DNA of 64,000 nucleotides from Dendrobates tinctorius (GCF_039654945.1 NW_027361767.1:6820001-6884000), one strand, 5' to 3'; positions 442 through 49,700 are shown, numbered from the stretch's first letter. The notes: a model not told the origin generated them from the letters alone. Numbers and translations are program-made.

Positions 442-21107
<20,666 letters not shown>

Positions 21108-25250: not shown

Positions 25251-28200
25251 CAACTCCTCCAGACCAACGCAAGCATTGGCCTCCGCTGCTGTGCCTCCTC
25301 AAGGACAACGTAGCCGTTGGTCTCCTCCGCTGTCCCCTCACCCACTCCAGGCTGACATAACCATTGACCTCTTCCGCTGTCCCCCCTCAGGCCTACGCAA
25401 CCACTGGCTTCCGCTGCTGCATATCCCCCAGGCCAATGAAACAATTAACTTCCTCCACCGTCCTCCCCCCCCCCCCCCCCCCGAAGCCAATGCAACCCCT
25501 CCAGGCCAACAACTATTAGCTTCCGCTGTCCACCCCCCTCTAGGCCCACGCAAACAGTTGCCTCCGCTGCTGCACCATCCTTAAGGCTGACGCAACCGTT
25601 GGCCTCCGAACCCACCCTGCCTTTTTTTTATGATGGGACTATTTACATTCTTTTTTTTTTATTTTTCCTTGCTTATCCAGATGTTGTAGACTAAGTTGTG
25701 AAATGTGACTTTTACCAAATGTCACATTTTTTTTTTTTTTTTTTTGGGGGGGGAAGCGTTGGGGGATCAATCCTCATTCCTGTCCGTGCCCAGAGTAACA
25801 TTACTGGAAGAGTTTTCAAGTTGAGTTTTTTTAAATCGCTAATTTTTAAAGGACTTATGACCACTGGAAAGTTTCAAAAGAAGAACGGGTAAAGAAAAAC
25901 AAAAAGCATGTTAATTCTCCGCTGAATTCATAGAGCGTGCGCGCCATTTTTAAAAATTTGTCGCGGAACAAAGTTGGCGAATGCAATAAGACAATAAATA
26001 AGAAACATGACTTCAAGAAATAACAAATGATGACTAGAATATTTAAAGGAAGAGCCGGAAGCGACCCATGCAGTGGATGGAGGGCAGGTGAATGGCACGA
26101 GGAGTAGTAATCCCTGGTACTATGGATAAATCATAAATAAGGGGACGGTAGCCTGCAATGCCCGGCACACGGGCACAGATGGCAGGAGGATATAGAAGGA
26201 AGAAAGCTCCAAGAGCTGGTACAGAACAATGGTGCCATTCTGCTCAGTCACCTCCATTATTCCTCCTTTTCACCCTCTGACAACGGCTTTTTTTGGGAGC
26301 ATCAGGGACAGAAAACTACAAAAGTCGACAATAGGGGAGAACCACAAAGGATGACCACGCAACCTGCAATGCCATAAATTGTGCAAGACCCCATTAAAGT
26401 GAATGGGGGGGGGGGGGGCGAGTACTGGATGTGCAGGGAATGCGTACACCGGGATTCTGCTCTAAGCCAGCGCTGCAGCCGCTGATTCAGTGGAGGACGG
26501 ACCTCCACAGATCATAAAATGATGGCATGCAGGGGTACATGGGGAGTCCTACAGAAGATGGGTACCCACCTGTAAGAAAGGCAAGATCTATCAACTGGAC
26601 GTTGTCAGGTGCAAGGGGGGGGTCAACTGAGGACCTGCCTACCACCAACAACCCCACAATCAACCCCCTTTCCTGAGAAATAAGCACCAAGGAAGCACTA
26701 CCCCTCGAGCCACCAGGACCGCCTACCAGCTACCCCCCCAACCACTGAGGCCACAACCTGTTACCACCTCGAGCCACCAGCTACCCCTCCCCATAGCACA
26801 AGGGCTGTTACCAACTACTCTTCAACCCTGAGAAACCAGGGCCGCTTGCAGCACACCTCGTTCCTTGAGCCACCGAGGACTCTAGCAGAATCCCATCCCC
26901 TCCCCCAAGCCACCAGGGCCAGTACTAGAGCTCCCCCTTCTGAGCCACCAGTGCCGCTACCAGCTTCACCCCCCCATGGGCCACCAGCTAAGCCCCCAAC
27001 CACCTGGGCTACCACCAGGATCTCTATCAGCCAAACCCCCCCCACCAGAATGGCTACTGGCATCATCCCACCCCCAGGGCCACTACAAGCAACAGACTGA
27101 TGTCAGGTGGTATAAATGAACCCACAGACCAAGAGGAACCATTGACGATCATCTTCCAATTGCACTGACAAAAGTGATGACAGATGTCACACCAATTCCT
27201 TCAGCGCCATTGTGAAGGAGCCCTTAAACTAAGAGATGTGTTGTGACGCAGATTTACGTTAGCATTGCCTGTATCCGTTACTGCCAATAGCATTCGCCAA
27301 CATCCTAGAGTGTATGGGGCAGACATGGGGGAAACCAAGGGGCCAACAACCCGCTTCTAAGATGGACTATGTGTCCTGCAGCTGCCGGCCCCCCTCTCCC
27401 CCTGCAAGCGGCCATACACAAGCCCAACGGACCAATCGTCTAATGCTTACGATGACGTCTCGACAGCAGAATCTCAGCGTTGTCCTCGGAGGAGTCTAGC
27501 GGCAGCTTACGCTTCACCCCCACCGACTACAGGAGCACACTCCACCAAATCGAGTACGCATGTGTATGGTGGAGTCGGAAGGAATAGAGGCGATACGACC
27601 ACCTTTAGTCTTGGGTCTTAGGCCACCACCTGGTCTAGAAATAACCTGTGACCACCTACAGCCCCTGGAAACAAGAGGGTCTAGACATAGCACAAGATCA
27701 AGTATGTTACCGGCACCATAAAGAGGACCACCATAGTGACCAAGTCTTCCCCTGCCCATCATGCCTGCATCCTCCTTATTTGCATCCCACATGCCCCAGA
27801 TAAACCAATGGGCATAATGTGTTACAGTCTGGGCAGATGCCAGTCATGCCGCACACCGGTCATCTACACGGTATAACGGTCATCTATGGCTCCAGGCATC
27901 TGCCCTTTATTACGCTCTGCCTTGTAATGTCCAACCAGTGGACAGGTGCAGCAATAAGCAGCCAACGCCGCCAGCCTGGCACCACGATGCCGTCCGGATC
28001 CAGGAGCCATCTAGGAATAGTCGCCAGTCACCATCCAGCAAATACCGGCTACTCCAGACATGCCGTATACACTGCGGGCACACAGAATGGCGCTGCCATG
28101 GCACCTCCATACCGAGGAGCACTACCAGTCGATCCCAACCATTCCCATGCCGGTGCCACCCAGCGCCCATCTCCATCACGGCTGGCACGACATCCGCAGG

Positions 28201-28615
28201 TCTGCCCATAGTGACCCCGCCAACCAGTGCCACTCAGTTCACCCCAGGGGCACGGTGACCCGGCGACTTGCCCAACGTAGGCACCAAAAACTAAGGTCAA
28301 CGCCAACTTTTGGGGCAGAGCGGGCAACTTACAGAAAGTACAGACATGATGGATTTCCATAGGAGAGGGGGGCACATGATGCCACAAGCAATGGCAGTGC
28401 CCAGTGTCACCCACCCTGCCCCACACAGGAGGTGAGTGCCAGCCCTGCCCCCAGCACCCCAATACCTGGAGCTCCTCGCTGCAATCAGGCCCCTTTGTCC
28501 CGGCTGCACCTCCCACTACCCGCCCACTTCATTCAATGACTGCCCAGCCCGCTCCCCTCCTCCTCTCCGGCCGGGCACAGCGCCCTCTAGAGGCCGAGCC
28601 GCCCCCGCCGCTCAC

Positions 28616-28830
28616 CTCTCTACACCGCCGGCAGCCACCGTTCTCCGGGACTCAGCCGGCTGCAGCCCCCTTCCCACGGCCAACACTGTGCTCACTGCTC
28701 AACTAAGCTGTGCTCCCCTCCCCCTCCGCTTTATATACTCCAAGCGCGGCATGGGCGGCGTGACGTCACGACGTTGCTCCCTCTTTGTCCTATAGAGAAA
28801 AAGGATGGCATTGATTGCCATGGAGACGGC
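28616..28830 (-). promoter_or_regulatory. Candidate SMARCA4 promoter and non-coding exon 1
   Basis: CpG-rich; CRE TGACGTCA 28761-28768; TATATAAA on the - strand 28730-28737; X-box-like ATTGCCATGGAGAC 28814-28827; strong donor GAG|gtgagc at 28616. Confidence 0.6.
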
Positions 28831-29989
28831 TGGGGGAAGCAGCCGCCATCTTTAATAAGGGCAGGTGCCGCTTGGTAGGCTTCACAGTCACAAGATGCCC
28901 CTTTTCAAGTGTTTTCATTAACTCTATAACAACCATGTTGGAAAAGTAATTTTGGCATCTTCCATGTGACTTGTGTGTAACCCCATGCGGGGAGCGAGGG
29001 GCGCTGTTCCTTATATAACGAGCCCATTATTAGCGATCGTACCCGTAATGCATGTCCCGGGTGTGTGACTGGGGTTTCCCAAATGGAAGCGTTCTGTACC
29101 GATCTCCAGCGCCTTCATGAAATGAAAACATGCGAATCATTAGGATTAGTCCCCGTCTTCCACCGTTACGCCCCGTTCACACTTCCTTTATGCCGTCCAG
29201 TGCGGACCACCGTGGCAGGTAGTCTTCTCTTCTGTATGCTTAGATTGTCATTTTGAGGGGGCTCGGTAGGTTCTGTGACATCTCGGGGTCTAGTAAGGGA
29301 CAGGGTGGTGGGCCGCGGGGGGGGAGGCCGCCTGTCCCGGTGGTCCGTACTGGATACCAGATCAGGGCAGTGCTGGGCGAATTGCTTGTCTCCTGTTTTT
29401 CCCATATAAAAAGATTGTCCAGTCAGAAGTCATCACAACTGTACGGGACAGGCGACAGCTTACTGGGACCAGTGGATCCTGGACAATCGGCAGAGCGGGG
29501 CACCTTTATGCACGTTTCAATGGAGCAGTGCACACGCCCAACCGCTGCACCATTCATCCTCTATGGGACTGGCAGAAAAACTTCACAGCCCCATTGGTAA
29601 TGAATGGAGTTGGGGAAGGGCAGGCACACAGGGTCAGACTGAAGAACATTGGGCCCACCAGAGGACTTGATTGTGAGGGCCCCACTCAAGGTTTGCGCTA
29701 TGAATTCTCCTGAAGAAGAAGCCAGGGCCCACTGGAGGATTCTCCACTTCTCTGGTGGGTCAGTCCAACTCTGCGGGCACGTGGCTCCATTGTAACGGGC
29801 ATAAAGGAACCCCGCTCTGCTGATTGTCTGGGATCCACTGGTCCCAGTAAGCTAGTGTCTACCCCACAGAGGGAAGAGACGTCGCCTTTGCTGGTCGACC
29901 CCTTCACGTTACCCTCTGTACACTGGGTAGGGGATAGCTTTCTGTTTGGTACATGTCCGACTGCTTGGACCCCTCGAGATCAGGACTTC

Positions 29990-32900
29990 GCGCATTGCAC
30001 TGACCCCTATGTCTAGATCAGAGGGTGTCTCAGAGATCAGACCCCGGGCCGTGCACTGACCCCTATGTCTACATCAGGGGGTGTCCCAGAGATTAGGACC
30101 TCAGGCAGTGCAGTGACCCCCTATGTCTACATCAGGGGGTGTCCCAGAGATTAGGACCTCGAGCCGTGCAGTGACCCCTATGTCTACATCAAGGAGTGTC
30201 CCAGAGATTAGGACCTCGAGCCGTGCAGTGACCCCCTATGTCTAGATCAGGGGGTGTCCCAGAGATTAGGACCTCGAGCCGTGCAGTGACCCCTATGTCT
30301 ACATCAAGGAGTGTCCCAGAGATTAGGACCTCGAGCCGTGCAGTGACCCCCTATGTCTACATCAAGGAGTGTCCCAGAGATTAGGACCTCGAGCCGTGCA
30401 GTGACCCCTATGTCTACATCAGGGGGTGTCCCAGAGATTAGGACCTCGAGCCGTGCAGTGACCCCTATGTCTACATCAAGGAGTGTCCCAGAGATTAGGA
30501 CCTCGAGCCGTGCAGTGACCCCCTATGTCTACATCAGGGGGTGTCCCAGAGATCGGACCTCGGGCAGTGCAGTGACCCCCTATGTCTAGATCAGGGGGTG
30601 TCTCAGAGATTAGGACCTCAGGCAGTGCAGTGACCCCCTATGTCTACATCAGGGGGTGTCCCAGAGATTAGGACCTCGAGCCGTGCAGTGACCCCTATGT
30701 CTACATCAAGGAGTGTCCCAGAGATTAGGACCTCGAGCCGTGCAGTGACCCCCTATGTCTACATCAGGGGGTGTCCCAGAGATTAGGACCTCGAGCCGTG
30801 CAGTGACCCCTATGTCTACATCAAGGAGTGTCCCAGAGATTAGGACCTCGAGCCGTGCAGTGACCCCCTATGTCTACATCAGGGGGTGTCCCAGAGATCG
30901 GACCTCAAGCCGTGCAGTGACCCCTATGTCTACATCAAGGAGTGTCCCAGAGATTAGGACCTCGAGCCGTGCAGTGACCCCTATGGCTACATCAGGGGGT
31001 GTCCCAGAGATCGGACCTCGAGCCGTGCAGTGACCCCTATGTCTACATCAAGGAGTGTCCCAGAGATTAGGACCTCGAGCCGTGCAGTGACCCCTATGTC
31101 TACATCAGGGGTGTCTCAGAGATTAGGATCTCGGGCAGTGCAGTGACCCCCTATGTCTAGATCAGGGGGTGTCCCAGAGATCGGACCTTGAGCCATGCAG
31201 TGACCCCTATGTCTACATCAGGGGGTGTCCCACAGAGATCGGACCTCGAGCCGTGCAGTGACCCCCTATGTCTACATCAAGGAGCGTCCCAGAGATCGGA
31301 CCTCGAGCCGTGCAGTGACCCCCTATGTCTACATCAGGGGGTGTCCCAGAGATCGGACCTCGAGCCGTGCAGTGACCCCCTATGTCTACATCAAGGAGTG
31401 TCCCAGAGATCGGACCTCGAGCCGTGCAGTGACCCCTATGTCTAGATATGGGGGTGTCCCAGAGATCGGACCTTGAGCCGTGCAGTGACCCCTATGTCTA
31501 CATCAGGGGGTGTCCCAGAGATCGGACCTCGAGCCGTGCAGTGACCCCCTATGTCTACATCAAGGAGTGTCCCAGAGATAGGACCTCGAGCCGTGCAGTG
31601 ACCCCTATGTCTAGATCAGGGGGTGTCCCAGAGATCGGACCTCGAGCCGTGCAGTGACCCCTGTGTCTACATCAGGGGGTGTCCCAGAGATTGGACCTCG
31701 AGCCGTGCAGTGACCCCTATGTCTAGATCAGAGGGTGTCCCAGAGATCGGACCTCAAGCCGTGCAGTGACCCCTATGTCTACATTAGGGGGTGTCCCAGA
31801 GATCGGACCTCGAGCCGTGCAGTGACCCCTATGTCTACATCAGGGGGTGTCCCAGAGATCGTACCTCGAGCCGTGCAGTGACCCCCTATGTCTAGATATG
31901 GGGGTGTCCCAGAGATCGGACCTCGAGCCGTGCAGTGACCCCTGTGTCTACATCAGGGGGTGTCCCAGAGATCGGACCTCGAGCCGTGCAGTGACCCCTA
32001 TGTCTAGATCAGGGGGTGTCCCAGAGATCGGACCTCGAGCCGTGCAGTGACCCCTATGTCTACATTAGGGGGTGTCCCAGAGATCGGACCTCGAGCCGTG
32101 CAGTGACCCCTATGTCTACATCAGGGGGTGTCCCAGAGATCGTACCTCGAGCCGTGCAGTGACCCCCTATGTCTAGATATGGGGGTGTCCCAGAGATTAG
32201 GACCTCGGGCCGTGCAGTGACCCCCTATGTCTACATCAGGGGGTGTCCCAGAGATTAGGACCTCGAGTCGTGCAGTGACCCCTATGTCTACATCAGGGGG
32301 TGTCCCAGAGATTAGGACCTCGAGTCGTGCAGTGACCCCTATGTCTACATCAGGGGGTGTCCCAGAGATTAGGACCTCGAGTCGTGCAGTGACCCCCTAT
32401 GTCTACATCAGGGGGTGTCCCAGAGATTAGGACCTCGAGTCGTGCAGTGACCCCTATGTCTACATCAGGGGGTGTCCCAGAGATTAGGACCTCGAGTCGT
32501 GCAGTGACCCCTATGTCTACATCAGGGGGTGTCCCAGAGATTAGGACCTCGAGTCGTGCAGTGACCCCTATGTCTACATCAGGGGGTGTCCCAGAGATCG
32601 GACCTCGAGTCGTGCAGTGACCCCTATGTCTACATCAGGGGGTGTCCCAGAGATGGGACCTCGAGCCGTGCAGTGACCCCTATGTCTACATCAGGGGGTG
32701 TCCCAGAGATTAGGACCTCGAGTCGTGCAGTGACCCCCTATGTCTACATCAGGGGGTGTCCCAGAGATTAGGACCTCGAGTCGTGCAGTGACCCCCTATG
32801 TCTACATCAGGGGGTGTCCCAGAGATTAGGACCTCGAGTCGTGCAGTGACCCCCTATGTCTACATCAGGGGGTGTCCCAGAGATTAGGACCTCGAGTCGT

Positions 32901-33690
32901 GCAGTGACCCCTATGTCTACATCAGGGGGTGTCCCAGAGATGGGACCTCGAGTCGTGCAGTGACCCCTATGTCTACATCAGGGGGTGTCCCAGAGATTAG
33001 GACCTCGAGTCGTGCAGTGACCCCTATGTCTACATCAGGGGGTGTCCCAGAGATGGGACCTCGAGCCGTGCAGTGACCCCTATGTCTACATCAGGGGGTG
33101 TCCCAGAGGTCGGACCTCGAGTCGTGCAGTGACCCCTATGTCTACATCAGGGGGTGTCCCAGAGATTAGGACCTCGAGTCGTGCAGTGACCCCTATGTCT
33201 ACATCAGGGGGTGTCCCAGAGATGGGACCTCGAGTCGTGCAGTGACCCCTATGTCTACATCAGGGGGTGTCCCAGAGATCGGACCTCGAGTTGTGCAGTG
33301 ACCCCTATGTCTACATCAGGGGGTGTCCCAGAGATGGGACCTCGAGCCGTGCAGTGACCCCTATGTCTACATCAGGGGGTGTCCCAGAGATTAGGACCTC
33401 GAGTCGTGCAGTGACCCCCTATGTCTACATCAGGGGGTGTCCCAGAGATTAGGACCTCGAGTCGTGCAGTGACCCCCTATGTCTACATCAGGGGGTGTCC
33501 CAGAGATTAGGACCTCGAGTCGTGCAGTGACCCCTATGTCTACATCAGGGGGTGTCCCAGAGATGGGACCTCGAGCCGTGCAGTGACCCCTATGTCTACA
33601 TCAGGGGGTGTCCCAGAGGTCGGACCTCGAGCCGTGCAGTGACCCCCTATGTCTACATCAGGGGGTGTCCCAGAGGTCGGACCCCCACAG
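29990..33690. repeat. 56-58-bp tandem satellite, about 3.7 kb (roughly 64 units)
   Basis: Unit gacccctatgtctacatcagggggtgtcccagagattaggacctcgagccgtgcagt. Confidence 0.97.
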
Positions 33691-34009
33691 ATCATTGAAT
33701 GTTGGGATTGGGGGTTGTCGGAGGACACTGGCTGTTCAGCCGTAGCCACTTTTCACCACGATTTTCTCTCCAGCTCCTTTAACAGAAACCATGAAATAAT
33801 CAGTTTTTATTATTTTATTTTTATGGTCCCTGTTTCATGTTTTTTTGCTTCCACCGACTATAAATAAAGTTATTACTTCCTGAATTGTTTTTATTCATGA
33901 CCTTAGTGGAGATTTCCTAACCCCCACGCGTGTTTATTACAGGACAGCGTCTCTAGTCCTCAGGTAACTTCTCCTCACAGCCTTTGTTTCCACAAGAATG
34001 GAGCGGCCT

Positions 34010-34230
34010 CCCTAACCAAGATGGCGGCGCAGGCCTCAGCACGCCGGCCACGTGACACCGAGGGGCGTGACAAAGGGGGGCTGGAGAATGAGTAAGGGGC
34101 GTGTCCACTCATTCATTCGCCGGCTGCCAATCAGCTGCTGGATGCGGCGTCTCACAATCTCGGGCGAGGCTTGAACCGCACTGGGCGAGAGTGACGCATG
34201 CGCAGTCAGTGCTCCACTGCGGCTGAGGAG
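34010..34230. promoter_or_regulatory. TATA-less CpG promoter-like element, target unassigned
   Basis: YY1 AAGATGGCGGC 34018-34028; E-box CACGTG 34049-34054; CCAAT 34127-34131; NRF1-like ACGCATGCGCA 34194-34204. Confidence 0.5.
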
Positions 34231-35269
34231 GAGAACGTGACAGAGCCCCTCCAGCCCTTGGGGTAGTAGTTGGCCTTTCTGTGATATATTAATGGAGTTG
34301 TACAGGTCACCACCGGTGTGACCCCACTTCCAGGATTGGCACCCCATCCCTGGCTCAGAAAGGATGGGGTGTAAAAGCAAGTGATGGCAGAAGGTTACAA
34401 TGTGTTCGTCTGTAACTGGGGCAGCGCCACTTATCAAAGCCCCGGTCCATCTTCAGCGTAATACAGCCAGAAAGAAAAAACTACAGTATTTTTTTTATAC
34501 AAAATTTGCATACATTTGCATACATCTTCCTTGTGAATGTCCCTTTAACACAAATATGCCCCTTTAAGAAAATATTAAAGGGATTTTTCCATTGTGTCAT
34601 GAGCTGAACTCGGGCAGAGCTGCTGAGCTCAGTGATTGGCTGCAGCGCTGTTGATGTGACAGGTAATAACAGGCCCTGGGATCAGCGGCTTAGCGTTAGA
34701 CCTGGGGAGGGTGAATAAGGCACAGCTGTGTGTTGGTAGCCGCCACTTGGGTACGTAGGTGTTGAGGGACGGCCTGCAGCGGTTTCTGCTTTGATGACAC
34801 ACGTGGCGGACAGCTGGCGCCTTGTCCTGGTGTGTGGACGCTCCATCACTGCCCCTGACCACTAGGGGGCAGGCATTGTGGCCCTGCGGTGGAGATAAAG
34901 CCGCCCCCGTTCTCCATCTCCGTGCCTGCAGGTTGTGGGGGCAGAACAGCAACTGGAAAATGTGTTGGGTGGATGATGATCGAGGCTCATTCCTCTCCAG
35001 TGAGCACATGACGGCGTGAGTCTGCAGGGAGGCACGCCGTCATCTCAAAGGGGGTCTCCACTACTGGTAAAAGAACAGCCTCATCAACCTGGCTGGTGGC
35101 GCCAGTAATCCCGACCAGCTCCTAGCTTCCTCCTCTGATGAGACAGGTGAGGGGCAATACATGACCGCTGCAGACAATCAGTGATGACTGATCAGCTGCA
35201 GCAGTTCTGGGTGATCCAGTGGCCAAGTGATGCAGCACCACTGGTGGGAGTACAGGATACTGATACTAA

Positions 35270-35780
35270 GGGTGCAGGATAACGACGCTGATAATCGAGG
35301 TACATGATACCATGATACTGAAGGTGCAGGATAATCACACTGACACTTGGGGTAAAAGATAATGACACTTGGGTACAGGATAATGACACTGACACTGGGG
35401 GTGCAGGATAATGACGCTGACACTGGGGGTGCAGGATAATGACGCTGACACTCGGGGTGCAGGATAATGACGCTGACACTTGGGGTACAGGATAATGACA
35501 CTGACACTTGGGGTGCAGGATAATGACACTCGGGGTACAGGATAATGACACTGACACTGGGGGTGCAGGATAATGACACTGACACTGGGGGGGCAGGATA
35601 ATGACACTCGGGGTACAGGATAATGACGCTGACACTGGGGGTGCAGGATAATGACACTGACACTTGGGGTGCAGGATAATGACACTCGGGGTACAGGATA
35701 ATGACACTGACACTGGGGGTGCAGGATAATGACACTGACACTGGGGGGGCAGGATAATGACACTCGGGGTGCAGGATAAG
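35270..35780. repeat. Minisatellite with about 22-bp and 28-bp units
   Basis: Repeats of ggggtgcaggataatgacact(gacact). Confidence 0.92.
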
Positions 35781-36350
35781 GACGCATTTGATATTTGAGG
35801 TACCACTACGTCCCTCGTCCTCCCCGGCCTTCCATTGTCCGCCTATGCTCCCATTGCTCCAGTCATACAGGTGTGAATGTTATCGGGCATGATGCAGGAT
35901 CGCTGCGCTCCGGACTCTGAGGTAAATCTGTAACGAGACACTGGAGGTTTATTGGATCATATTACAGATCACAATCACGGTCGGATACTCGTGTGACGTC
36001 CAGAGATGGGGGGTCGGGGCTGACAGCGGTTTTCGGGGTTATTACATATATATGTGGCTTTTGGCTGTCTTTGTGCCGCCATGGACATTGGGGGCTGTGT
36101 GCAGACCATCAGATTCCAATACAGGGGGCTGTGTAATGGACATCCTTAGTGCCCACTGATTAACCCTTTATGAGCACCTGAAAACCCCATGTCCCCACAA
36201 CTACTAGAAACAGCAGAGCCTGACAAGTCCATTTTTCCCGCCATAGTTTCTTTGGCTGCGGGCAGAGCAATGTCCTTGGCCCCACAGCCGGGGTTACACT
36301 GACGACATACAGGACATATAGTGACAGTCATATAGTAGGCTCACGCGGTG

Positions 36351-39300
36351 TCACTCGCAGAATACCGTGTATACAGACACCACACAGAACAGACTATCAT
36401 TCTGGTACACGTGAGCTGCATAATTGTCAGCGTGGGGGTCCCAGAGGCAGCGGCTGACCACTTTGATGTCTTCCTGCCCTCTCTCGCCCATGGTGGCCAC
36501 ACACAGCATCTTGTATCGTGCAGGTAACACCTTCTTCACCTGGATCCTGATCTCCTCGCTGATCTCCTTCACTAGCGATGGCACTTTTTGGGGGTCATAA
36601 GTGGTGCCCCCCAACCGTAACGGGAGGTAACTTTCCAGAATGTTCCTTATGGCGGAGACCTGGACTTTCTCTGGTGGCCGAGAGGCAAAAGACGGAGGCT
36701 GTGGGGGGTTAGAGAAAGTAGAAAAGATCACTACATGGCTAAGTCGTCCCAGCGGGACCCTCTTCACCTTCAATTTTTCCTCCTTCCTCTAACTAAAAAT
36801 TTTAAACTTCTTGTTTGATACCGTTATATCGGGTTATTCTACTTTTTTACAGTATGGGCTGCAGTTTTTTATTGGTACCACTTTTTGCCCCATGACTTTT
36901 TTTTTTTTTTTTTGAAGGGGTAAAGTAACCAAAAAGATGTGGTTTTGCTATTTCAATTGCACACATGGTGATAATATAATTAAAAAATAAAAATATTTTA
37001 TTTATTTATTATTTGTATTCTTATTTAATTTTGTTTTTTTTATTCTTTGGATTTTATTTACAGGATAAAGTAGTCGATTTGGACGTTTATAATTTTTTAA
37101 ATTTTTCACATTTTTTATTTGTCTCCTCTTGGGGACTCGGATGATTTTCCAACCTCCTGAAAGTCACGGTCAGAATGGACAGCGGCACCTAAAGCGGTTA
37201 CACTACTGCGATCGGAGCGAGCAGTTAGTCCTGAGTCCTCGCCTTAGATACCATATGTTGGGTTCTTTAAACCGAAGCCTGGGCAGAGTGCGCCCCCCCT
37301 CAGTCACCATGGACCCCCGGATTGCTGGCGCCACCCCTGAGTAAGTAGTATGACGAATGGTATAATAACAGGAGCGTGGGGTGATCGAAGCCCTATTAAT
37401 ATCCATCTTTCTTCAGTTCAGCAGGACACTATAAAAAAAAAAAAGCATTTATTATTTTGGGAAAAATGTCCCCATATTTAATACATGGGCCCTTTAAGTA
37501 AAATTTCTTTTCTTCAGAACTGCAAAAAAAAAAGTCACCCCGGCTACGTTCTATTGTTGCCATGGCTACGGAATTTGATGAAGTTCCGAGGCTTTTTCAC
37601 TGCTTAACTCAGAACGCTGGCAAATCTCGTCGCCATGGCAACGACAGCATGGGCCCGGGAGTTGTGGCGCGTATACAATGTCAGCGACCATCGAGGCGCT
37701 CGCGACACGCGTATATAGCGCCCGTAAGGAAGGTGACTGGTTTGAGGGGAAGAGGCATGCATGTTTCACAGTGGGGGTGGTCTATGAGGAATTCATGTTT
37801 GGGGGGGCCACATCTGGTATATATCATGTCTACCCCCCGTTTATGATCCAAATGCTGCCCTGGTGGTACCCAAAGGGCAAGATGGCATCACTCACCTGAG
37901 GTTCTACTATTTCAATCTTCTTCACCAGCGCCACTTTCTGGGCTCGTCTCTCCTAACCGAGATACAAGGGTATGAGTACAGCATGGCTGCCATCATCAGG
38001 AACAGGGAACGGGGAGATTTAAGGTCTAAGAAGCCATTGACTGCAGCATGGCAGGGGCACCCCCATAATCAGTGCTGGCCTAAGTGCGCCAATTAAGAGT
38101 GCATGTAAACTCTAAAAGTGACCTCATTAATAGTGGCAGCAAAGGAGTATTCCTATAAAGATTGGCAATGTACCAGCATACCATGACAGTGCCAGCCTAA
38201 GCGTGCCCAAGTAATCAGTGTCAGCCTGAGAGTAATCACGTAAGCAGTGCTATAATGCCCTATAACCAGTGTCAGTCAAAGAGTGATCATATACAGTAAC
38301 TAGTACCCCTCCAGCCTCATAGTGATCACAAAAGCTGTACCAAAGTGCCCCTATAACCAGTGTGAGACAATGGTCATATAACTAGTGCCCCTCCAGCCTC
38401 ATAGCGATCACATAAGCAGGTCCTAAGTGCCCCTATAATCAGTGTCAGACAGTGGTCATATAACTAGTGCCCCTCCAGCCTCATAGTGATCACATAAGCT
38501 GTACCAAAGTGCCCCTATAACCAGTGTCAGACAATGGTCATATAACTAGTGCCCCTCCAGCCTCATAGCATCACATAAGCAGGTTCTAAGTGCCCCTATA
38601 ACCAGTGTCAGACAGTGGTCATATAACTAGTGCCCCTCCAGCCTCATAGCGATCACATAAGCAGGTCCTAAGTGCCCCTATAACCAGTGTCAGACAAAGA
38701 GATCATATAAGCAGTACCAAAGTACTCCTATAACAAGTGCTTTATAGAGAGTGATCACATAAGCAATGACTGAGTGCCCCTCTAAAAAAAATGTAAGCCT
38801 CAGTGATCACAAACATTGCCAAAGTGCCCCTATAACCAGTTTCAGACAGAGTGAACACATACGGAGTACCAAAGCACCCCTTTAACCAGTTTCACACAGT
38901 GATCACATAAGCAGTGTCATAGTCCCCTTATAACCAGTGTCAGAATTCCCCTCTAAATAGTCTGTCATGCTATAAGCAGTGCTAGTGTCCCTATATACAG
39001 TGCTAGACTGAGAGCAATGATATAGGACAATGACTGCGCTATAAAAGAGTCAGCCTGAGAAATGCTAATGTTTCTCTATAACCAGTGCCAGACAGGAATT
39101 GTCCCTATAAACTATCACTGTCCACAGACTGCTGATAATAAGAATACAATGCAGGGAATGGCCCCATAATCAGTGCAGTGACCATGCACCCCGATTAATT
39201 GTGTCAGATAGCGAATAGCCCAATATCCGCTGTCGGAATCTCCCCTGTAAACAGTGCGTCTATAAACTGTCAACCTGCATGGCCCCCATACACAGTGCCA

Positions 39301-42300
39301 GACAAAATGAGCAATATCTCTGCTGCCAGGAAGAGACGTGGGAAGCCAAAAAGTGGCTCTTCAGGTCCACTGAGCAGTGAATATGGTCTGACTACAGAAC
39401 TGGTCCCATAATAACTCCTGTAGATGGATGTCCGTCACCGAGCTGCCCATCATGTCACGTGTATCTGAAGCCGCAGTTCGCCATTCATCTGCTGTAAGTA
39501 CTTTATCATAATACACAATATTATTATTTCCCTTTTATAGCCTGCAGGTGGCGCTGTCTCCACTACTACATAATGTGGCTAAGGAAAAATGGACTCTTTC
39601 TAGGCAGTGACTGGAATTAGTGCTGACCCCTACTGGTGAAAAGTGGTATTACAAAATATCGAAATAATCATAGCGTAATGATATGTTGTAATATTAAACC
39701 TTATAATATACTTTGTTCTTTTTGACATGTCACATGCTCGCCGTCCACAAAAGTCTCAACCCCTACTTATCGGAATTTATAATGCCCCCCCATTACCCAT
39801 TGCCGGCAGCCCTCTTCACTGCCGGCCAAATTACTCCCTTGCATCACAAGTTCATCCTGATCCACCTGGTTCATGCTAGACTTACCTTCAGGTTCTTGGT
39901 CATTCTTTGGGCAGCGAGCAGACCGGTAAGACTCCAAGATGCTTGATTAATGATGGACACATTACCCAGGAAGGGCTTACTCCTTATAGGCTACACATGG
40001 GAAAAGTGCGGCATTATTTCATTTACTCGCTCATTAATCCTAGGTGCAATAGAATCATACTTGGCTTATTCCAGCACGGCTGGAGTAAGGTTATAATGCT
40101 ACATGTCATGGAGAAGAGAAATAAAAAATCCGATATCACAGGCGGTAATCACAATAGTTAGGGGTTCTGTGTGTTTCCTGCCCAAAAAAAAGGCGCTAAT
40201 GTATTCAGGGAAGATAATTTCCAGTAGGCAGACTGGACGTCTCCAGCCCACACCAGGGACATCACATGGAAATGCAATATTTCCAGGACATACCTACAAT
40301 ACTCTGATACCAACACTATCCATGGAGAGATCTGTGATCGGGGGACATATTCGCTTCTGTGGGTTCAAGTGCCAGGATTTTCAGCCTTGGGAAAACACAG
40401 AAATGTAATATCTGAATTATGGATAGATCATAGTCAGGATGGTGAAAGCACTGTACATAGGAGGCAATGTGCGGGGCTCACCCTGTATACAGGAGGCTAT
40501 GTGCGGGGCTCACCCTGTATACAGGAGGCTATGTGCGGGGCTCACCCTGTATACAGGAGGCTATGTGCGGGGCTCAGACTGTACATAGGAGGCTATGTGC
40601 GGGGCTCACCCTGTATACAGGAGGCTATGTGCGTGGCTCAGACTGTATATAGGAGGCTATGTGTGGGGCTCACCCTGTATACAGGAGGCTCTGTAAATAG
40701 GGGATGTGTGGTCTCATACTGTATATGGGGGCTATGTGCAGGCTCATACTGTATACGGGAGGCTATATGGGTCTCACACTGTATATAGTAGGCTATGTGC
40801 GGGCTCACACTGTATATAGGGGATGTGTGGGGGCTCATACTGTACATACAGTTAGGTCCATATATATTTGGACACATTTTTCTAATTTTGGTTCTAGACA
40901 TTACCACAATGAATTTTAAACAAAACAATTCAGATGCAGTTGAAGTTCAGACTTTCAGCTTTCATTTGAGGGTATCCACATTAACATTGGATGAAGGGTT
41001 TAGGAGTTTCAGCTCCTTAACATGTGCCACCCTGCTTTTAAAGGGACCTAAAGTAATTGGACAGATTAAATAATTGTAATTAAAATGTTCATTTCTAGTA
41101 CTTGGTTGAAAACCCTTTGTTGGCAATGACTGCCTGAAGTCTTGAACTCATGGACATCACCAGACGCTGTGTTTCCTCCTTTTTGATGCTCTGCCAGGCC
41201 TTCACTGCGGTGGTTTTCAGTTGCTGTTTGTTTGTGGGCCTTTCTGTCTGAAGTTTAGTCTTTAACAAGTGAAATGCATGCTCAATTGGGTCGAGATCAG
41301 GTGACTGACTTGGCCATTCAAGAATATTCCACTTCTTTGCTTTAATAAACTCCTGGGTTGCTTTGGCTTTATGTTTTGGGTCATTGTCCATCTGTAGTAT
41401 GAAACGACGACCAATCAGTTTGGCTGCACTTGGCTGGATCTGAGCACACAGTATGGCTCTGAAGACCTCAGAATTCATTCGGCTGCTTCTGTCCTGTGTC
41501 ACATCATCAATAAACACTAGTGACCCAGTGCCACTGGCAGCCATGCCTGCCCAAGCCATCACACTGCCTCCGCCGTGTTTTACAGATGATGTGGTATGCT
41601 TTGGATCATGAGCTGTACCACGCCTTCACCATACTTTTCTCTTTCCATCATTCTGGTAGAGGTTGATCTTGGTTTCATCTGTCCAAAGAATGTTCTTCCA
41701 GAACTGTGCTGGCTTTTTTAGATGTTTTTTAGCAAAGTCCAGTCTAGCCTTTTGATTCTTGATGCTTATGAGAGGCTTGCACCGTGCAGTGAACCCTCTG
41801 TATTTACTTTCATGCAGTCTTCTCTTTATGGTAGATTTGGATATTGATACGCCTACCTCCTGGAGAGTGTTGGTCACTTGGTTGGCTGTTGTGAAGGGGT
41901 TTCTCTTCACCATGGAGATTATTCTGCGATCATCCACCACTGTTGTCTTCCGTGGGCGCCCAGGTCTTTTTGCATTGATGAGTTCACCAGTGCTTTCTTT
42001 CTCAGGATGTACCAAACTGTAGATTTTCGAAACAATCACTGACCTCAGGGAGACCAGTCAAAGAAAACACTGCGGCAGCCGGCAAAGGCGCTCAATCAGT
42101 GAAATCCTAGGTGCATTGCTCCCTGGGAAATACGAATATGCAAATAAAGTCCGTGGAGCCTCATTTAAGAGTCTCAAACACGGGACTGTAGATTTTGCCA
42201 CTCCTAATGTTGTAGCAATTTCTCGGATGGTTTTTTTTCTGTTTTTGCAGCTTAAGGATGGCTTGTTTCACCTGCATGGAGAGCTCCTTTGACCGCATGT

Positions 42301-43428
42301 TTCCTTCACAGCAAAACCTTCCAAATGCAAGCACAACACCTCAAATCAACTCCAGGCCTTTTATCTGCTTAATTGAGAATGACATAACGAAGGGATTGCC
42401 CACACCTGTCCATGAAATAGCCTTGGAGTCAATTGTCCAATTACTTTTGGTCCCTTTAAAAACAGGGTGGCACATGTTTGTGGATACCCTCAAATGAAAG
42501 CTGAAAGTCTGAACTTCAACTGCATCTGAATTGTTTTGTTTAAAATTCATTGTGGTAATGTCTAGAACCAAAATTAGAAAAATGTGTCCAAATATATATG
42601 GACCTAACTGTATGTACATTATGAGCCCCCACACATCCCCTATATACAGTGTGAGCACGCACATAGCCTACTATATACAGTGTTTAGAAAAATGTTGTCT
42701 CTGTCCAAATATATATGGACCTCGCTGTAGGAAGCTATGTGAAGGCTCATACCGTAGATAGGGGATGTGTGGGTCATACTGTATATAGGGGGGCTATGTG
42801 CAGGCTCATACTGAATATAAACGAGGCTATGTGTGGGCTCATACTGTAGATAGGAGGCCATGTGGGGGCTCACTGTATATAGGGGATGTTAAAATACTTC
42901 ATTCTGCTCAATATTAAGGCACGCAATTATTAAAATAAAATCATAATTAATATTGAGCAAAAATAACTTCAGCCTATTGGTTGGGCCTCCACAGCAGTCA
43001 TGGACTGTCCAGTGGGCTCTTGGGAAAATTAATTGCCCCCACCCCAGGATTGAGCCTGTAATCTCTACTATAATCTCTGCTTCATGGTCCGAATTTGGAT
43101 CGTGAGGGCCGGAGCGGCCGGGGGTCTCCCTCCTGACCCGAACATTACACTGTTGAGTTTGGAACAGGTGAGTCGTGGCCGGGCCGGACCCCTGACCACG
43201 AATGTGCGGCAGGTAATGAGGTCACGCGGGGTCACATATAACCTGCAGATATCCTCACGTATTCTGTAGCTCGTCAGGCTTGTAATAAGCTTATAACGCT
43301 ACAGCAGACATTATAATGTTACAGCTCAGTGAAGACTTTACCATTTTCGGCCCCGATTTGTCAGCATTGTCCAGGCTGATCCGCACGCTGGCCACAGAGG
43401 ATCTTTTCCCACTGGTCTTGGATGCCAT
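36351..43428 (-). CDS. Tctex-1 domain dynein light chain-like protein, 198 aa, 4 coding exons
   Basis: Exons 43342-43428 (GCCGGCCACCATGG Kozak; MASKTSGKRSSVASVRISLDNADKSGPKM), 39886-39990, 37896-37952 and 36351-36698; all GT-AG, all phase 0, no stops. The last exon encodes the Tctex-1 fold (YDP...EISEEIRIQVK...RYKMLC...SRCLWDPHADNYAAHVYQNDSLFCVVSVYTVFCE*). AATAAA at 35948-35953. Confidence 0.85.
37556..37642. promoter_or_regulatory. Pair of RFX X-boxes in the last intron of the Tctex-domain gene
   Basis: GTTGCCATGGCTAC 37556-37569 and GTCGCCATGGCAAC 37629-37642 match the palindromic X-box consensus. Confidence 0.6.
38200..39130. repeat. Tandem repeat, about 82-bp dimer of about 41-bp subunits, degenerate edges
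   Basis: Core cagtgtcagacagtggtcatataactagtgcccctccagcctcatagcgatcacataagcaggtcctaagtgcccctataac. Confidence 0.85.
40450..40848. repeat. 32-bp minisatellite interrupted by a Tc1 (resumes at 42730-42890)
   Basis: Unit ctgtatacaggaggctatgtgcggggctcacc. Confidence 0.9.
40849..42727 (-). mobile_element. Decayed DD34E Tc1 transposon with long TIRs and a rearranged right end
   Basis: TA-flanked ends cagttaggtccatatatatttggac; transposase pieces 41626-42039 (GRPRKT, WTDETK) and 41095-41562 (QMDNDPKH...SPDLDPIE, spacing 34); frameshifts; 157-bp insertion. Confidence 0.92.
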
Positions 43429-44074
43429 GGTGGCCGGCAGCGTCCCCTCTCCAGGCAGCGGCACGGCGGCGTTGTGTTGGGAGACACGGCTGCTGGTAAA
43501 TACAGCGCTGTGTACCTGGAGGAGGAGAAGCCGTCGTGTGTCACCTGCGCTCTGACAACTAAGCCTTTATGTCAATAACCAGAGCCGAGCGGCAGCGGAA
43601 GGGTGCGCTCCATTCAGAGGGGAAAGCCGGGACACAAAGGGTAACCAGGGCTCCGAGAAAGGAGGCACGAAAAACACAGACCCCACCTGCCAGGAAAGCA
43701 GGGGTTGTAATGTGTGAGTATCACCTAGTGCTGCCCCCCCAGAGACAGAAGCCATTCTAGTCAGGGCCATAATGGACAGTAGCCAGCGTCTGGGAAAGCT
43801 GGAGACAATCAGCATGTCCGATGCCCATAGAGTTGTGTCTGTACATCCGGCCCCTCGTCCACCGGCGTATGACATCGGGCCCCTCCGGTCTATAACCTCC
43901 TGCCCCTTATCCCCCCAGTGTATACCCTCTGGCCCCCCACCATGCCATCCACCCTTACAACCAGAACGGCCGGTGGTGCAGAACTCACTGATACCAGCGC
44001 GGTTCTGTAATAAGGGCCACCGGGGTAACAAGTCTGTCCCTGACATTTCTTCCTCCTGACTCTTCCCCCATCAC

Positions 44075-44760
44075 CTGTGAGTGATATTATTGAGAAGTGG
44101 AAGGAACCGCAGCAACTCAGCCACAAAGTGCAGACCCCGTAATGTTATAGAGCGGGGGGCCGAGTGCTGAGGAGCAGAGGCCAGAAAACTCACAAACGCT
44201 CTGCTGACCCCATAACTGCAGAGTCCAGACCTCCTCTGGAATAACATCAGCACAAACACTGCACCCCCGCCGGGAGCTTCATGGCAGAGCAGCTACATGC
44301 AGCCGTACATCAAGCACAAGGCGGAGCGTCGGATGCAGTAGTGTAAAGCCTCCATCACTGGACTCTGGAGGAGACGTGTTCTGTGCAGTGACAGACCACA
44401 CCGCACTATCTGCGTCTGATGGAGGAGTCTGGGTTTGTGGATTCCAGAAGAACGTTACCCCTTGACAACACTGGGCCCGCTGTACCGACGGTGGAGGAGG
44501 ATAATGCTCTGCGCTTATCAGGGGTCGGCGTTGGGCCCTTAGTTCTACTAAAGGGAAGTCTTACATTTTCAGCATAAGACATTGTGACAAATGTATCTTC
44601 CAGCTTTCTGGTATGTTTGGTGAAGACCCTTTTCTGTTCCCCATGACTGTGCTCCATACAAATATTGAGGGGGAATTTGGTGGAAGAAGTTGACCAGCTG
44701 AACAGAGACTGTGAGCCCAGCCTCCCCCCCCCAACATCAGGGTCTAACCTCCAAAATCCC
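44075..44760 (+). mobile_element. Highly degenerate Tc1-like transposase remnant
   Basis: Recognisable decayed Tc1 coding stretches (aacatcagcacaaacact...cgggagcttcatgg; tggactctggag...gttctg...agtgac; ctgttcc..catgactgtgc); no open frame. Confidence 0.55.
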
Positions 44761-45389
44761 TAGACGCTCAGGTCAGTGCACCTAAAATATAAGCCCCTAT
44801 GACTGGGCCAAAACCTCACCCCCTATGCTGTAAGGATTGCAGGCGCAGTTTCCTCCCTCTCTTTTAGGGTCCGGCTGGCCCCGGCCTGATACAGCAGTGA
44901 TGCAAGTACCTGGTTACACAAACAGTCCTGTCCAGACACGACCTGGATAATCACCTACAGATCAGAGGAGAGATACGGCCGAACAACAAGCTATTCACAC
45001 GGCGGGATCTACTGTGCCGGAGAGTAATCCGCTGTGCCGGAGTAATCCCGCCTGGGTGTGCTGCACTGCTATACTGTGTGCACAACCTCCATATAATACC
45101 GGAGGGCGGGCGAAGCTTTACCTAGTGGTCACAAATATAGTGTACTCTAGTATTAAGCCCTCAGCAAAATAACCAGGACCTGCTCATCCTGAACCTCCTG
45201 TTGCATGCAAAATCCTCTCCCAAGATATTTTCCCTGTGACCCAAACGATCAGACATGTCAAAATCTATCTGCCCCATCTTTCTCTCAGCGCATTGCAAGA
45301 CCTCCCATACACAAAAGAAGACAGTTTGGGGGGGGGGGGGGAGGCATTAATGTAATCTCCTCTGACCTCGCTCAGTACCAGATGTGCAC

Positions 45390-45551
45390 TGAACTACGAC
45401 TCCCAGCATTACCTGTAAAGCTGCAAGCCCTCACCTGACACCGCCGCTCCCCGGCTCTGACGATACAACCTCTTATTATAAAGCTCTTAATTAGCGCTAT
45501 TAATTCCACCGCCGCCTTAATTACGGTGACAGCTCCGGTTGCCACGGTAAC
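45390..45551 (-). promoter_or_regulatory. Candidate promoter / non-coding first exon of the Tctex-domain gene
   Basis: X-box GTTGCCACGGTAAC 45538-45551; donor CAG|gtgagg at 45435; ZNF143-like ACTACGACTCCCAGCA near 45393. Confidence 0.5.
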
Positions 45552-46775: not shown

Positions 46776-49700
46776 TCACTGGAGGTCTTCACACATAACA
46801 ACCGGCTGGAATTTGAGCTCATAGAGTTTCTCGTTTTCCTCCGAGTGGAGATCATTATAGGCGATGGTTTTCATGCTGGGAGGAAGGTGACGGAACTCGT
46901 CTTCATTGATGTCAAAGTCCTTCATCTTATTCCTAAGAAGCCACCAGCGTCCGAAGAAGCCAACGTCCAGGACCCGGCCGGGAAAGTCCGACACGCGGGG
47001 CTGCAGGTGCGGGCACTGGGTGGTGTACAGATCGCAGGCCGGGTCACACGGAGCCTCGTACACCAGGGACAAACCCAGCAGCTTCACGTGTCGCAGGCGG
47101 CCCTGCTGGCTCAGGGCGAGGAGATACTGCACGTGGCCATCAGACGTCCCGCTCCTCGTCCAAGGCGAAAGGAGGAGAAGACATGCCGACGCTTCCAGGA
47201 GGGAGCACTGGAAAGAGTCCTCAGAGGGGGCTGTAGACGAGCAGACCCCCACCCCTGCCAGCAAGGACAGATACACCGAGGCCTTAAAGGGGCGCTCCCT
47301 GGCTCCCACTACAATATCCTTACAGGCTTCCTTATAATCACGCAGGAGGCTCCTCGTCCAGATAACTGAGGAAAAGCAAGAGAGAAAATAAGTACATAGG
47401 GGGCAGTATTACAGTAGTTATATTCTTGTACATAGGGGGCAGTATTACAGTAGTTATATTCTTGTACATAGGGGGCAGTATTACAGTAGTTATATTCTTG
47501 TACATAGGGGGCAGTATTACAGTAGTTATATTCTTGTACATAGGGGGCAGTATTACAGTAGTTATATTCTTGTACATAGGGGGCAGTATTACAGTAGTTA
47601 TATTCTTGTACATAGGGGGCAGTATTACAGTAGTTATATTCTTGTACATAGGGGGCAGTATTACAGTAGTTATATTCTTGTACATAGGGGGCAGTATTAC
47701 AGTAGTTATATTCTTGTACATAGGGGGCAGTATTACAGTAGTTATATTCCTGTACATAGGGGGCAGTATTACAGTAGTTATATTCTTGTACATAGGGGGC
47801 AGTATTACAGTAGTTATATTCTTGTGCATAGGGGGCAGTATTACAGTAGTTATATTCCTGTACATAGGGGGCAGTATTACAGTAGTTATATTCTTGTACA
47901 TAGGGGGCAGTATTACAGTAGTTATATTCCTGTACATAGGGGGCAGTATTACAGTAGTTATATTCTTGTACATAGGGGGCAGTATTACAGTAGTTATATT
48001 CTTGTACATAGGGGGCAGTATTACAGTAGTTATATTCTTGTACATAGGGGGCAGTATTACAGTAGTTATATTCTTGTGCATAGGGGGCAGTATTACAGTA
48101 GTTATATTCTTGTACATAGGGGGCAGTATTACAGTAGTTATATTCTTGTACATAGGGGACAGTATTACAGTAGTTATATTCTTGTACATAGGGGGCAGTA
48201 TTACAGTATATTCTTGTACATAGGGGGCAGTATTACAGTAGTTATATTCTTGTGCATAGGGGGCAGTATTATAGTAGTTATATTCCTGTACATAGGGGGC
48301 AGTATTACAGTAGTTATATTCTTGTACATAGGGGGCAGTATTACAGTAGTTATATTCCTGTACATAGGGGGCAGTATTACAGTAGTTATATTCCTGTACA
48401 TAGGGGGCAGTATTACAGTAGTTATATTCCTGTACATAGGGGGCAGTATTACAGTAGTTATATTCTTGTACATAGGGGGCAGTATTATAGTAGTTATATT
48501 CTTGTACATAGGGGCAGTATTATAGTAGTTATATTCTTGTACATAGGGGCAGTATTATAGTAGATATATTCTTGTACATAGGGGGCAGCATTATAGTAGT
48601 TATATTCTTGTACATAGGGGCAGTATTATAGTAGTTATATTCTTGTACATAGGGGGCAGTATTATAGTAGTTATATTCTTGTACATAGGGGGCAGTATTA
48701 TAGTAGTTATATTCTTGTACATAGGGGGCAGTATTATAGTAGTTATATTCTTGTACATAGGAGCAGTATTATAGTAGTTATAGTCTTGTACATAGGGGCA
48801 GTATTATAGTAGTTATATTCTTGTACATAGGGGGCAGTATTATAGTAGTTATATTCTTGTACATAGGAGCAGTATTATAGTAGTTATAGTCTTGTACATA
48901 GGGGGCAGTATTATAGTAGTTATAGTCTTGTACATAGGGGGCAGTATTATAGTAGTTATAGTCTTGTACATAGGGGGCAGTATTATAGTAGTTATATTCT
49001 TGTACATAGGAGCAGTATTATAGTAGTTATATTCTTGTACATAGGGACAGTTTTATAGTAGTTATATTCTTGTACATAGGGGGCAGTATTATAGTAGTTA
49101 TATTCTTGTACATAGGAGCAGTATTATAGTAGTTATATTCTTGTACATAGGGGGCAGTATTATAGTAGTTATATTCTTGTAAATAGGGGGCAGTATTATA
49201 GTAGTTATATTCTTGTACATAGGAGCAGTATTATAGTAGTTATATTCTTGTACATAGGGGGCAGTATTATAGCAGTTATATTCTTGTACATAGGAGCAGT
49301 ATTATAGCAGTTATATTCTTGTACATAGGGGGCAGTATTATAGTAGTTATATTCTTGTACATAGGAGCAGTATTATAGTAGTTATATTCTTGTACATAGG
49401 GGGCAGTATTATAGTAGTTATATTCTTGTAAATAGGGGGCAGTATTATAGTAGTTATATTCTTGTACATAGGAGCAGTATTATAGTAGTTATATTCTTGT
49501 AAATAGGGGGCAGTATTATAGTAGTTATATTCTTGTACATAGGAGCAGTATTATAGCAGTTATATTCTTGTACATAGGGGGCAGTATTATAGTAGTTATA
49601 TTCTTGTACATAGGAGCAGTATTATAGTAGTTATATTCTTGTACATAGGGACAGTATTATAGTAGTTATATTCTTGTACATAGGGGGCAGTATTATAGTA

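Follow-up and report, generated by a model that had tools for sequence, protein, structure and literature searches.

Between the genes TIMM29 and SMARCA4, the frog Dendrobates tinctorius carries an intact minus-strand gene of four coding exons that encodes a 198-residue protein of the Tctex-1 dynein light chain family. It lies in a stretch of 64,000 nucleotides (GCF_039654945.1 NW_027361767.1:6820001-6884000), which we call the window and whose own coordinates are used throughout. We think it likely that this is a functional gene for a Tctex dynein light chain, and that it is one of two jawed-vertebrate paralogues, here A and B, of a Tctex subfamily that has no name; the frog gene is paralogue A. 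Our confidence is greatest for the gene, its family, its paralogy and its synteny taken together, while a role in ciliary dynein, proposed by analogy, stands about evenly balanced between true and false.

Exon 1 (43428-43342, 87 nt) encodes residues 1-29, with its start codon in GCCACCATGG and a KRSS motif, and exon 2 (39990-39886, 105 nt) encodes residues 30-64, which include an SLGN motif and the beginning of a basic helix (GLLAAQRMTKNLK). The distal part of that predicted helix comes from exon 3 (37952-37896, 57 nt; residues 65-83, ERRAQKVALVKKIEIVEPQ), and the entire Tctex-1 domain from exon 4 (36698-36351, 348 nt; residues 84-198 and the stop codon), which follows an acceptor ending in ccccccacag. 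The three introns (43341-39991, 39885-37953 and 37895-36699) have GT...AG borders and all lie in phase 0, so that the spliced minus-strand exons add up to 597 nt, or 198 codons and a TGA. Reading these borders confirmed, at the level of the sequence, the exons and in-phase joins proposed in a first-pass annotation of the window, and the translation is identical to an automatic NCBI (RefSeq) model of D. tinctorius named "DYNLT2B-like". The TGA lies at 36353-36351, and an AATAAA polyadenylation signal stands about 398 nt past it at 35953-35948, close to the 400 nt first estimated; the span between them (36350-35954) is the probable 3' untranslated region (UTR). On the other side, 43646-43429 probably covers the 5' UTR and the core promoter, and it includes blocks that four anurans have in common. 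The range first given to the gene, 35948-45551, does enclose all four exons and extends too far upstream: nothing in 43650-45551 could be tied to the gene, and the conserved promoter and 5' UTR block stops near 43646.

A scan of the window for open reading frames (ORFs) catches only the last exon, within an ORF at 36351-36773, as the first-pass annotation had noticed. This exon matches the Pfam Tctex-1 family (PF03645) over profile positions 2-95 of 95 with E=1.2e-26 and 93.3 bits, against a gathering score of 22.8 bits. Scanned separately against Pfam, exons 1 and 2 matched no family, and exon 3 is below the length needed for such a scan. Among solved structures, the closest chains by sequence are human DYNLT2B (75 bits) and the Chlamydomonas outer-arm chain LC2, with DYNLT1/3 matching far more weakly (36 bits). 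In an AlphaFold2 model built from 74 relatives, residues 90-198 take up the Tctex fold with a predicted local distance difference test score (pLDDT) above 90. The domain has helices at 97-112 and 122-138 and strands at 145-155, 175-182 and 186-196, and as modelled it has the two-helix, four-strand layout of Tctex proteins. Ahead of it the model places a 23-residue helix at residues 50-72 (pLDDT 60-72) that contains GLLAAQRMTKNLKERR, preceded by a disordered head of residues 1-49. Foldseek returned 36 Tctex-type matches at E<=0.001; the best were Tctex chains of axonemal or cytoplasmic dyneins, including one with a template modelling (TM) score of 0.87 (8j07_l7).

By analogy with these solved chains, the Tctex domain would dimerise; like DYNLT2B, it would most probably pair with a partner of the Tctex1 type, and the dimer would clamp the N-terminal segment of an intermediate chain in a ciliary dynein, either axonemal or of intraflagellar transport (IFT). 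The DYNLT1:DYNLT2B heterodimer 8rgi and the axonemal pairs in 8j07, 8glv and 6zyw, all of them among the fold matches, serve as models for such an arrangement. The extension would add a contact helix and sites for a basophilic kinase (KRxS) that could tune assembly or motility. In sperm of fish and sea urchins, the onset of motility goes with phosphorylation of an outer-arm chain related to Tctex2, which makes kinase regulation of the extension plausible. The data themselves show the structure of the gene, its family, fold, purifying selection, place in the tree and synteny; the expression pattern, the dynein partner and the phosphorylation are inferred.

The strongest competing idea is that this is a conserved Tctex-fold protein acting outside dynein, for example as the dimerisation hub of another complex. 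Complexes other than dynein are known to use Tctex and LC8 chains, and DYNLT4 and DYNLT5 are themselves described as 'not well characterized' (PMC8754002). Yeast Tda2 is also among the fold matches, and some proteins with this fold act without dynein. The closest solved relatives by sequence and by fold nonetheless all sit in axonemal or cytoplasmic dyneins, and the named relatives come from animals with ciliated cells (a brachiopod, an annelid, a rotifer, amphioxus and tunicates). We therefore regard a function outside dynein as unlikely, if the least improbable of the alternatives considered here, and prefer a ciliary dynein chain.

The promoter offers a hint in the same direction. In an alignment of Dendrobates, Phyllobates, Bufo and Xenopus tropicalis, an invariant TATTTACC lies about 75 nt upstream of the ATG, TTATTGACA/TTATTTACA lies about 140 nt upstream, and GTCAGAGCGCAGGTG is conserved as well; in a blastn comparison, the block 43507-43646 is common to Dendrobates and Bufo. 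The first two elements resemble forkhead cores and would suit control by FOXJ1. An RFX X-box was also considered, and was dropped as evidence, the aligned upstream sequences giving a weak half-site resemblance only.

The subfamily is marked by its long N-terminal extension, whose basic helix the first-pass annotation had called distinctive. The frog protein reads GLLAAQR-x-TKNLK within the predicted helix, and eight residues of the helix (G52, L54, A56, R58, T60, K61, L63 and K64) are invariant in 13 group A proteins from frog to shark. Across the subfamily the consensus is S-L/F-x-G-L-L-A-A-Q/R-R-x-T/S-K-x-L-K. A search with the helix pattern matched groups A and B, lamprey and a clade of protostome proteins, and found no match among the DYNLT2B, DYNLT4, DYNLT5 and LC2-like rows; this distribution speaks for a common origin, on which the tree of the domain by itself does not decide. 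A second difference lies just before the domain, where E-N/P-T-Y-x-x-x-P stands in DYNLT2, 2B, 4 and 5 as well as in the protostome relatives. The alignments bear out the earlier observation that the usual ENTYQL is missing here: the frog protein has QPPSFASRP in its place, group A as a whole Q-P/V-P-x-F-x-S-x-P, and group B lacks even the aromatic residue. An S-L-G-N-[V/I] motif is conserved across group A, again from frog to shark. Near the N-terminus, the RSS site that had been likened to one for protein kinase A (PKA) appears as K-R-x-S-[V/I], with K8, R9 and S11 invariant in 21 anurans and the motif present in most elasmobranchs; within the group A alignment it is absent from caecilians and chimaera. 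As a candidate basophilic kinase site it matches at the motif level only. A search of the ESM Atlas with the N-terminal 90 residues gave no usable match.

An exhaustive profile search of 1.84 billion protein representatives ranked an anuran representative first (380 bits), followed by a caecilian (198) and a chimaera (192). From 164 to about 100 bits, in overlapping ranges, came shark, sturgeon, alligator, a second frog protein, teleosts, jerboa, platypus, protostomes (120 bits and lower), amphioxus, tunicates and lamprey. Rows that could be named as DYNLT5, DYNLT4 or DYNLT2B ranked below these, at 84-94 bits. A word-index search with the group A alignment added ten cartilaginous fishes, a second caecilian, lungfish, coelacanth, turtles, a lizard, gar, bowfin and eel. 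We placed 79 rows, not including a Logan-derived representative (P0136) that resembled human DYNLT5, in a maximum-likelihood IQ-TREE phylogeny under LG+C20 with posterior mean site frequencies (PMSF), with support from the ultrafast bootstrap and the Shimodaira-Hasegawa-like approximate likelihood ratio test (SH-aLRT). Lampreys and jawed vertebrates form one clade (95/89), within which A and B are sister groups; lamprey, amphioxus and tunicate proteins branch outside both. Group A (99/88) joins anurans and caecilians (100/97) with chimaera, sharks and rays (100/99). Group B (83/87) joins ray-finned fishes (96/90) with a second clade (99/96) of the second shark copy, coelacanth, lungfish, the second frog and caecilian copies, reptiles, platypus and jerboa.

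It could be argued that the frog protein is a diverged orthologue or co-orthologue of DYNLT5 (TCTEX1D1) or DYNLT4 (TCTEX1D4), since these are long-extension Tctex proteins of similar overall size, the automatic names of its relatives include '5-like' and '4-like', and in the representative search DYNLT4/5 rows came relatively near. Little is known of the two, which are presumed to serve as dynein chains in cilia or sperm (PMC8754002). In the tree, however, fish, bird and mammal DYNLT4 and DYNLT5 rows fall into separate starred clades of their own, and the approximately unbiased (AU) test rejects an exclusive union of group A with DYNLT5 (p=0.00014) and with DYNLT4 (p=0.016). DYNLT4 and DYNLT5 also keep the ENTY-type motif and lack the helix motif, and the frog protein is the opposite on both counts. 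DYNLT4 carries an RVSF site that binds protein phosphatase 1 (PP1). No RVxF-type motif ([RK][VI]x[FW]) was found in residues 1-90 of the frog protein. We accordingly give very little weight to an origin within DYNLT4 or DYNLT5.

Slightly less credible again is a one-to-one relationship with DYNLT2B (TCTEX1D2), which serves dynein-2 and inner arm I1/f as a light chain, even though it agrees in Pfam family and in fold, matches better than any other solved chain (TM 0.87, with 37% identity across the domain) and likewise has an N-terminal extension ahead of the domain. The automatic annotation favours this identity, and both X. laevis copies of the group A gene are named plainly 'DYNLT2B'. Those names are nevertheless inconsistent from one orthologue to the next (2B-like, 5-like, TCTEX1D1-like), and the DYNLT2B rows stand with LC2-like proteins in a starred clade far from group A. 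The AU test rejects an exclusive group of A and DYNLT2B (p=0.0013). DYNLT2B is moreover about 140 aa long, reads ENTYILRP before the domain and has no basic helix, whereas the frog protein has 198 aa, lacks the ENTY(I/Q)L motif and has the predicted 23-residue helix. Neither the tree nor the AU tests thus show confident one-to-one orthology to a known DYNLT gene, and the first-pass annotation was right to call this a separate paralogue. None of the six named human genes (DYNLT1, 2, 2B, 3, 4 and 5) is orthologous to the frog gene; judged by its sequence, the protein belongs to an old, unnamed Tctex subfamily with a long N-terminal extension that bears a basic helix.

The last coding exon of TIMM29 (46776-47309, minus; Pfam Tim29, E=1e-47) lies upstream and the first coding exon of SMARCA4 (20790-21107, minus; an ORF) downstream, so that the order is TIMM29, Tctex gene, SMARCA4 on one strand, as the first-pass annotation had it. 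The same three genes follow one another on a single strand in X. tropicalis, and Rhinatrema and Phyllobates have a Yip1 gene (YIPF2-like), Tim29 and the Tctex gene. The chimaera group A gene is flanked by a gene of the DOCK-C/D family (DOCK6-like) and SPC24, and that of a skate lies near a CAMSAP gene. DOCK6, SPC24, SMARCA4 and CAMSAP3 belong to human 19p13.2, and human TIMM29 and SMARCA4 are presumably direct neighbours. Group B has other surroundings. In platypus and alligator it adjoins a reductase gene with Oxidored-like, FAD and NAD domains (CYB5RL-like), with a CUB-domain gene (CDCP2-like) on the opposite side in alligator, and in shad, a teleost, it adjoins an SSDP-family gene (SSBP3-like); CYB5RL, CDCP2 and SSBP3 belong to human 1p32.3.

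The two paralogues are also distributed differently. Group A occurs in anurans, caecilians, sharks, rays and chimaera, and protein searches of predicted proteomes found none in amniotes, ray-finned fishes or salamanders. A search with the group B alignment reached many anurans, salamanders, caecilians, crocodilians, turtles and squamates. Its mammals were platypus, Jaculus, Perognathus and Talpa, that is a monotreme, two rodent lineages and a mole; the matches listed contained no other mammal for group B, and no bird for any part of the subfamily. As judged from these matches, group B in mammals shows a patchy pattern of repeated loss. The shark Heterodontus has both copies, and frogs and caecilians also keep both. 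Because sharks, rays and chimaera carry copy A, it predates the split between cartilaginous and bony vertebrates. The same observation bears on the wording of the first-pass suggestion that the gene was lost from the mammalian locus or never present there: of the two, 'lost' is the better term. Since A and B are sister genes on regions long regarded as paralogous, they probably arose in the genome duplications of early vertebrates.

The occurrence of both copies in frogs and caecilians, and their position as sisters, might instead be read as an amphibian-specific duplicate of paralogue B that landed next to SMARCA4. Such an origin has very little room left, less even than DYNLT2B orthology: ten cartilaginous-fish proteins group with amphibian A at 99/88, Heterodontus has A and B alike, and the chimaera copy of A also sits in a 19p13.2-like neighbourhood. 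Ancient duplication followed by loss remains the account we prefer. Groups A and B share the four-coding-exon structure, the helix motif and a degenerate pre-domain motif; they are 31-38% identical, and group B differs in its CYB5RL-like locus, away from TIMM29/SMARCA4, and in its much wider distribution.

Conservation within frogs supports the gene as real. We recovered 27 anuran orthologues, from Ascaphus and Bombina through dendrobatids, most of 192-204 aa, and in an alignment of the 21 that are full length both the N-terminal part and the domain are conserved. The Xenopus orthologue is XP_002942890. The exon sizes of 87, 105, 57 and 348 nt are identical in Phyllobates and Bufo, and the 87-nt exon 1 is found in X. 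tropicalis too. The X. tropicalis gene and the group B genes have four coding exons with the domain in one exon of about the same size, and the last exon of the chimaera gene is likewise about the size of the 348-nt frog exon. The ratio of nonsynonymous to synonymous substitution (omega, Nei-Gojobori) is 0.10 against Phyllobates, at a synonymous divergence (dS) of 0.19, and 0.065 against Bufo (dS 0.80). Exons 1-3 alone give 0.12 and 0.08 respectively, and exon 4 gives 0.05-0.09. These ratios indicate that all four exons are under purifying selection. Identity to Phyllobates and Bufo is 80-96% in the exons and 41-70% in the adjoining 150 nt of intron. Exon 2 matches, at the DNA level, 94% of positions in Phyllobates, 86% in Bufo and 79% in X. 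tropicalis, and for exon 3 identity is 96.5% to Phyllobates and 84% to Bufo, against 50-70% in the intron alongside. Conservation of the upstream exons had been set beforehand as a test of the gene, and in exon size, omega and the exon islands that stand out against Bufo they are conserved.

In blastn against Bufo the only matches are the four exons, the promoter block, one upstream block, one block in intron 3 and a downstream tandem repeat. The 3' UTR is about 80% identical to that of Phyllobates, and in the comparison with Bufo conservation ends at the stop codon. The intron 3 block (37479-37701), the sole intronic match, is about 70% identical to Bufo intron 3 (L010:15479-15688). The upstream block is 113 nt long (44918-45030), lies about 1.5 kb before the start codon and is 84% identical to Bufo (L010:6260-6379); the intergenic DNA around it is unmatched there, and the block may represent an enhancer or part of a repeat. 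Two predicted isoforms of orthologues bear on the exon structure: one in Anomaloglossus (P0005) skips the 57-nt exon 3 in frame, losing the distal half of the helix, and one in Rhinoderma (P0007) uses an alternative first exon.

As an indirect check on splicing, we recorded the share of words from exon 2 and 150 nt on each side that sequencing runs contain; a run with the exon only would be expected to have 75 of the 375 words. Whole-genome runs contained 1.0 of the sampled words, and ten small D. tinctorius runs from four studies contained 0.16-0.18, close to the expected share; one of these runs also has 0.44 of the last exon and UTR. Such exon-only shares fit spliced RNA or exon capture, and are a hint rather than a proof. 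That the gene is decaying or mispredicted, a single Tctex exon that happens to have splice-like sequences near it, is the least probable alternative of all, close to negligible: although its joins are read from the genomic sequence, its frame is intact with identical exon structure in three frog families, omega is low on the upstream exons too, the exons are islands amid diverged introns, and sharks and frogs have the N-terminal motifs in common.

Several points count against our reading of a functional, ciliary paralogue A. Its splice joins are read from genomic sequence, and the runs with exon shares are labelled 'RNA?' or '?', labels that are guesses, so that exon capture may have produced these libraries. 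The promoter cores that resemble forkhead sites are short, and their conservation may have another cause. The link to dynein is made by analogy, the example of Tda2 applies here, and no tissue information was found. On the phylogenetic side, DYNLT1/3 and named vertebrate DYNLT2 were left out of the tree, and group B as one clade has support of only 83/87. The tree does not decide whether the protostome helix clade joins that of the vertebrates; an AU test of a single clade for all helix-bearing proteins does not reject it (p=0.24), and the absence of group A from amniotes and ray-finned fishes comes from predicted proteomes, not genome searches.

Relatives beyond the vertebrates may extend the history of the subfamily. 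In the protostomes Lingula, Owenia and Brachionus an N-terminal basic helix with SL-x-GLLAS-K/R-RFAK-x-L stands ahead of the Tctex domain, and amphioxus and tunicate proteins have looser forms of it. These invertebrate helix-bearing proteins outscore the named DYNLT families against the frog profile, and they keep EPTYRMEP before the domain where the vertebrate forms are degenerate. It is conceivable, if doubtful, that helix-bearing Tctex proteins make up a seventh DYNLT subfamily as old as the bilaterians, with two copies in jawed vertebrates, both lost from humans, so that the six-gene HGNC nomenclature would overlook it. Copy A, retained by cartilaginous fishes and amphibians alone, would in that case be a dedicated accessory chain of ciliary or sperm dynein, whose KRxS sites and basic helix put motility under kinase control.

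Other features of the window concern the neighbours and mobile DNA. SMARCA4 exons run from 21107 down to 298 on the minus strand and include the QLQ, SnAC, bromodomain and helicase motifs; the possibility that these 21 kb hold a SMARCA4 without helicase exons was ruled out, since the minus strand has each of GLGKT, DEGHR, TGTPLQN and RAHRIGQ. Inside SMARCA4 there is also a 621-aa ORF (6947-8812) that resembles a retroelement pol. The 15 kb that separate the Tctex gene from SMARCA4 (24400-35800) have a GC content of 0.53-0.58, tandem repeats and long spurious ORFs on both strands. Intron 1 of the Tctex gene contains a Tc1/mariner-type transposon (about 40776-42683) with inverted terminal repeats of 205 nt (40776-40980 and 42479-42683, 99% complementary), a second repeat pair of 45 nt (41019-41063 and 42434-42478, 96% complementary) and a transposase in two ORFs (DDE_3 and HTH_Tnp_Tc3_2); so close a match between the terminal repeats points to a recent insertion. 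Two Tc1-like transposase ORFs in the window (346 and 349 aa) look intact, and mobile elements surround the gene at 5600-10100, 17866-18906 and 58721-59770. Directly downstream of the polyadenylation signal is a tandem array with a 28/78-nt period (35245-35783). Such arrays also follow the Phyllobates and Bufo orthologues, so that this satellite is old or recurrent at that spot. A longer array with a 36-nt unit (47338-48560) lies just upstream of the TIMM29 exon, probably in a TIMM29 intron; it is AT-rich with a strong GC skew, and its ORFs read MYKNITTVILPP repeated dozens of times.

The fold and the family are ordinary and the interest of the gene is moderate; what is new, or at least unnamed, is the subfamily. 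The gene already exists as a RefSeq automatic model under inconsistent '-like' names, and group B models are called 'DYNLT5-like', '4-like' or '2B-like' in Alligator, Emys, Xenopus, Ambystoma, platypus, Jaculus, Talpa, Perognathus and teleosts. A nomenclature review lists six human Tctex paralogues (PMC8754002), and full-text literature searches turned up no description of the subfamily. The six human genes are the starting point both for DYNLT names and for most work on function, and Xenopus, a leading model for motile cilia, has on this analysis two further Tctex-type genes. Their mislabelling as DYNLT2B or DYNLT5 can mislead knock-down, proteomic and cross-species comparisons. Paralogues A and B offer a clean case of differential loss of ancient duplicates, in regions corresponding to human 19p13.2 and 1p32, and the subfamily is a testable candidate component of dynein in amphibians, sharks and many invertebrates, though not in humans.

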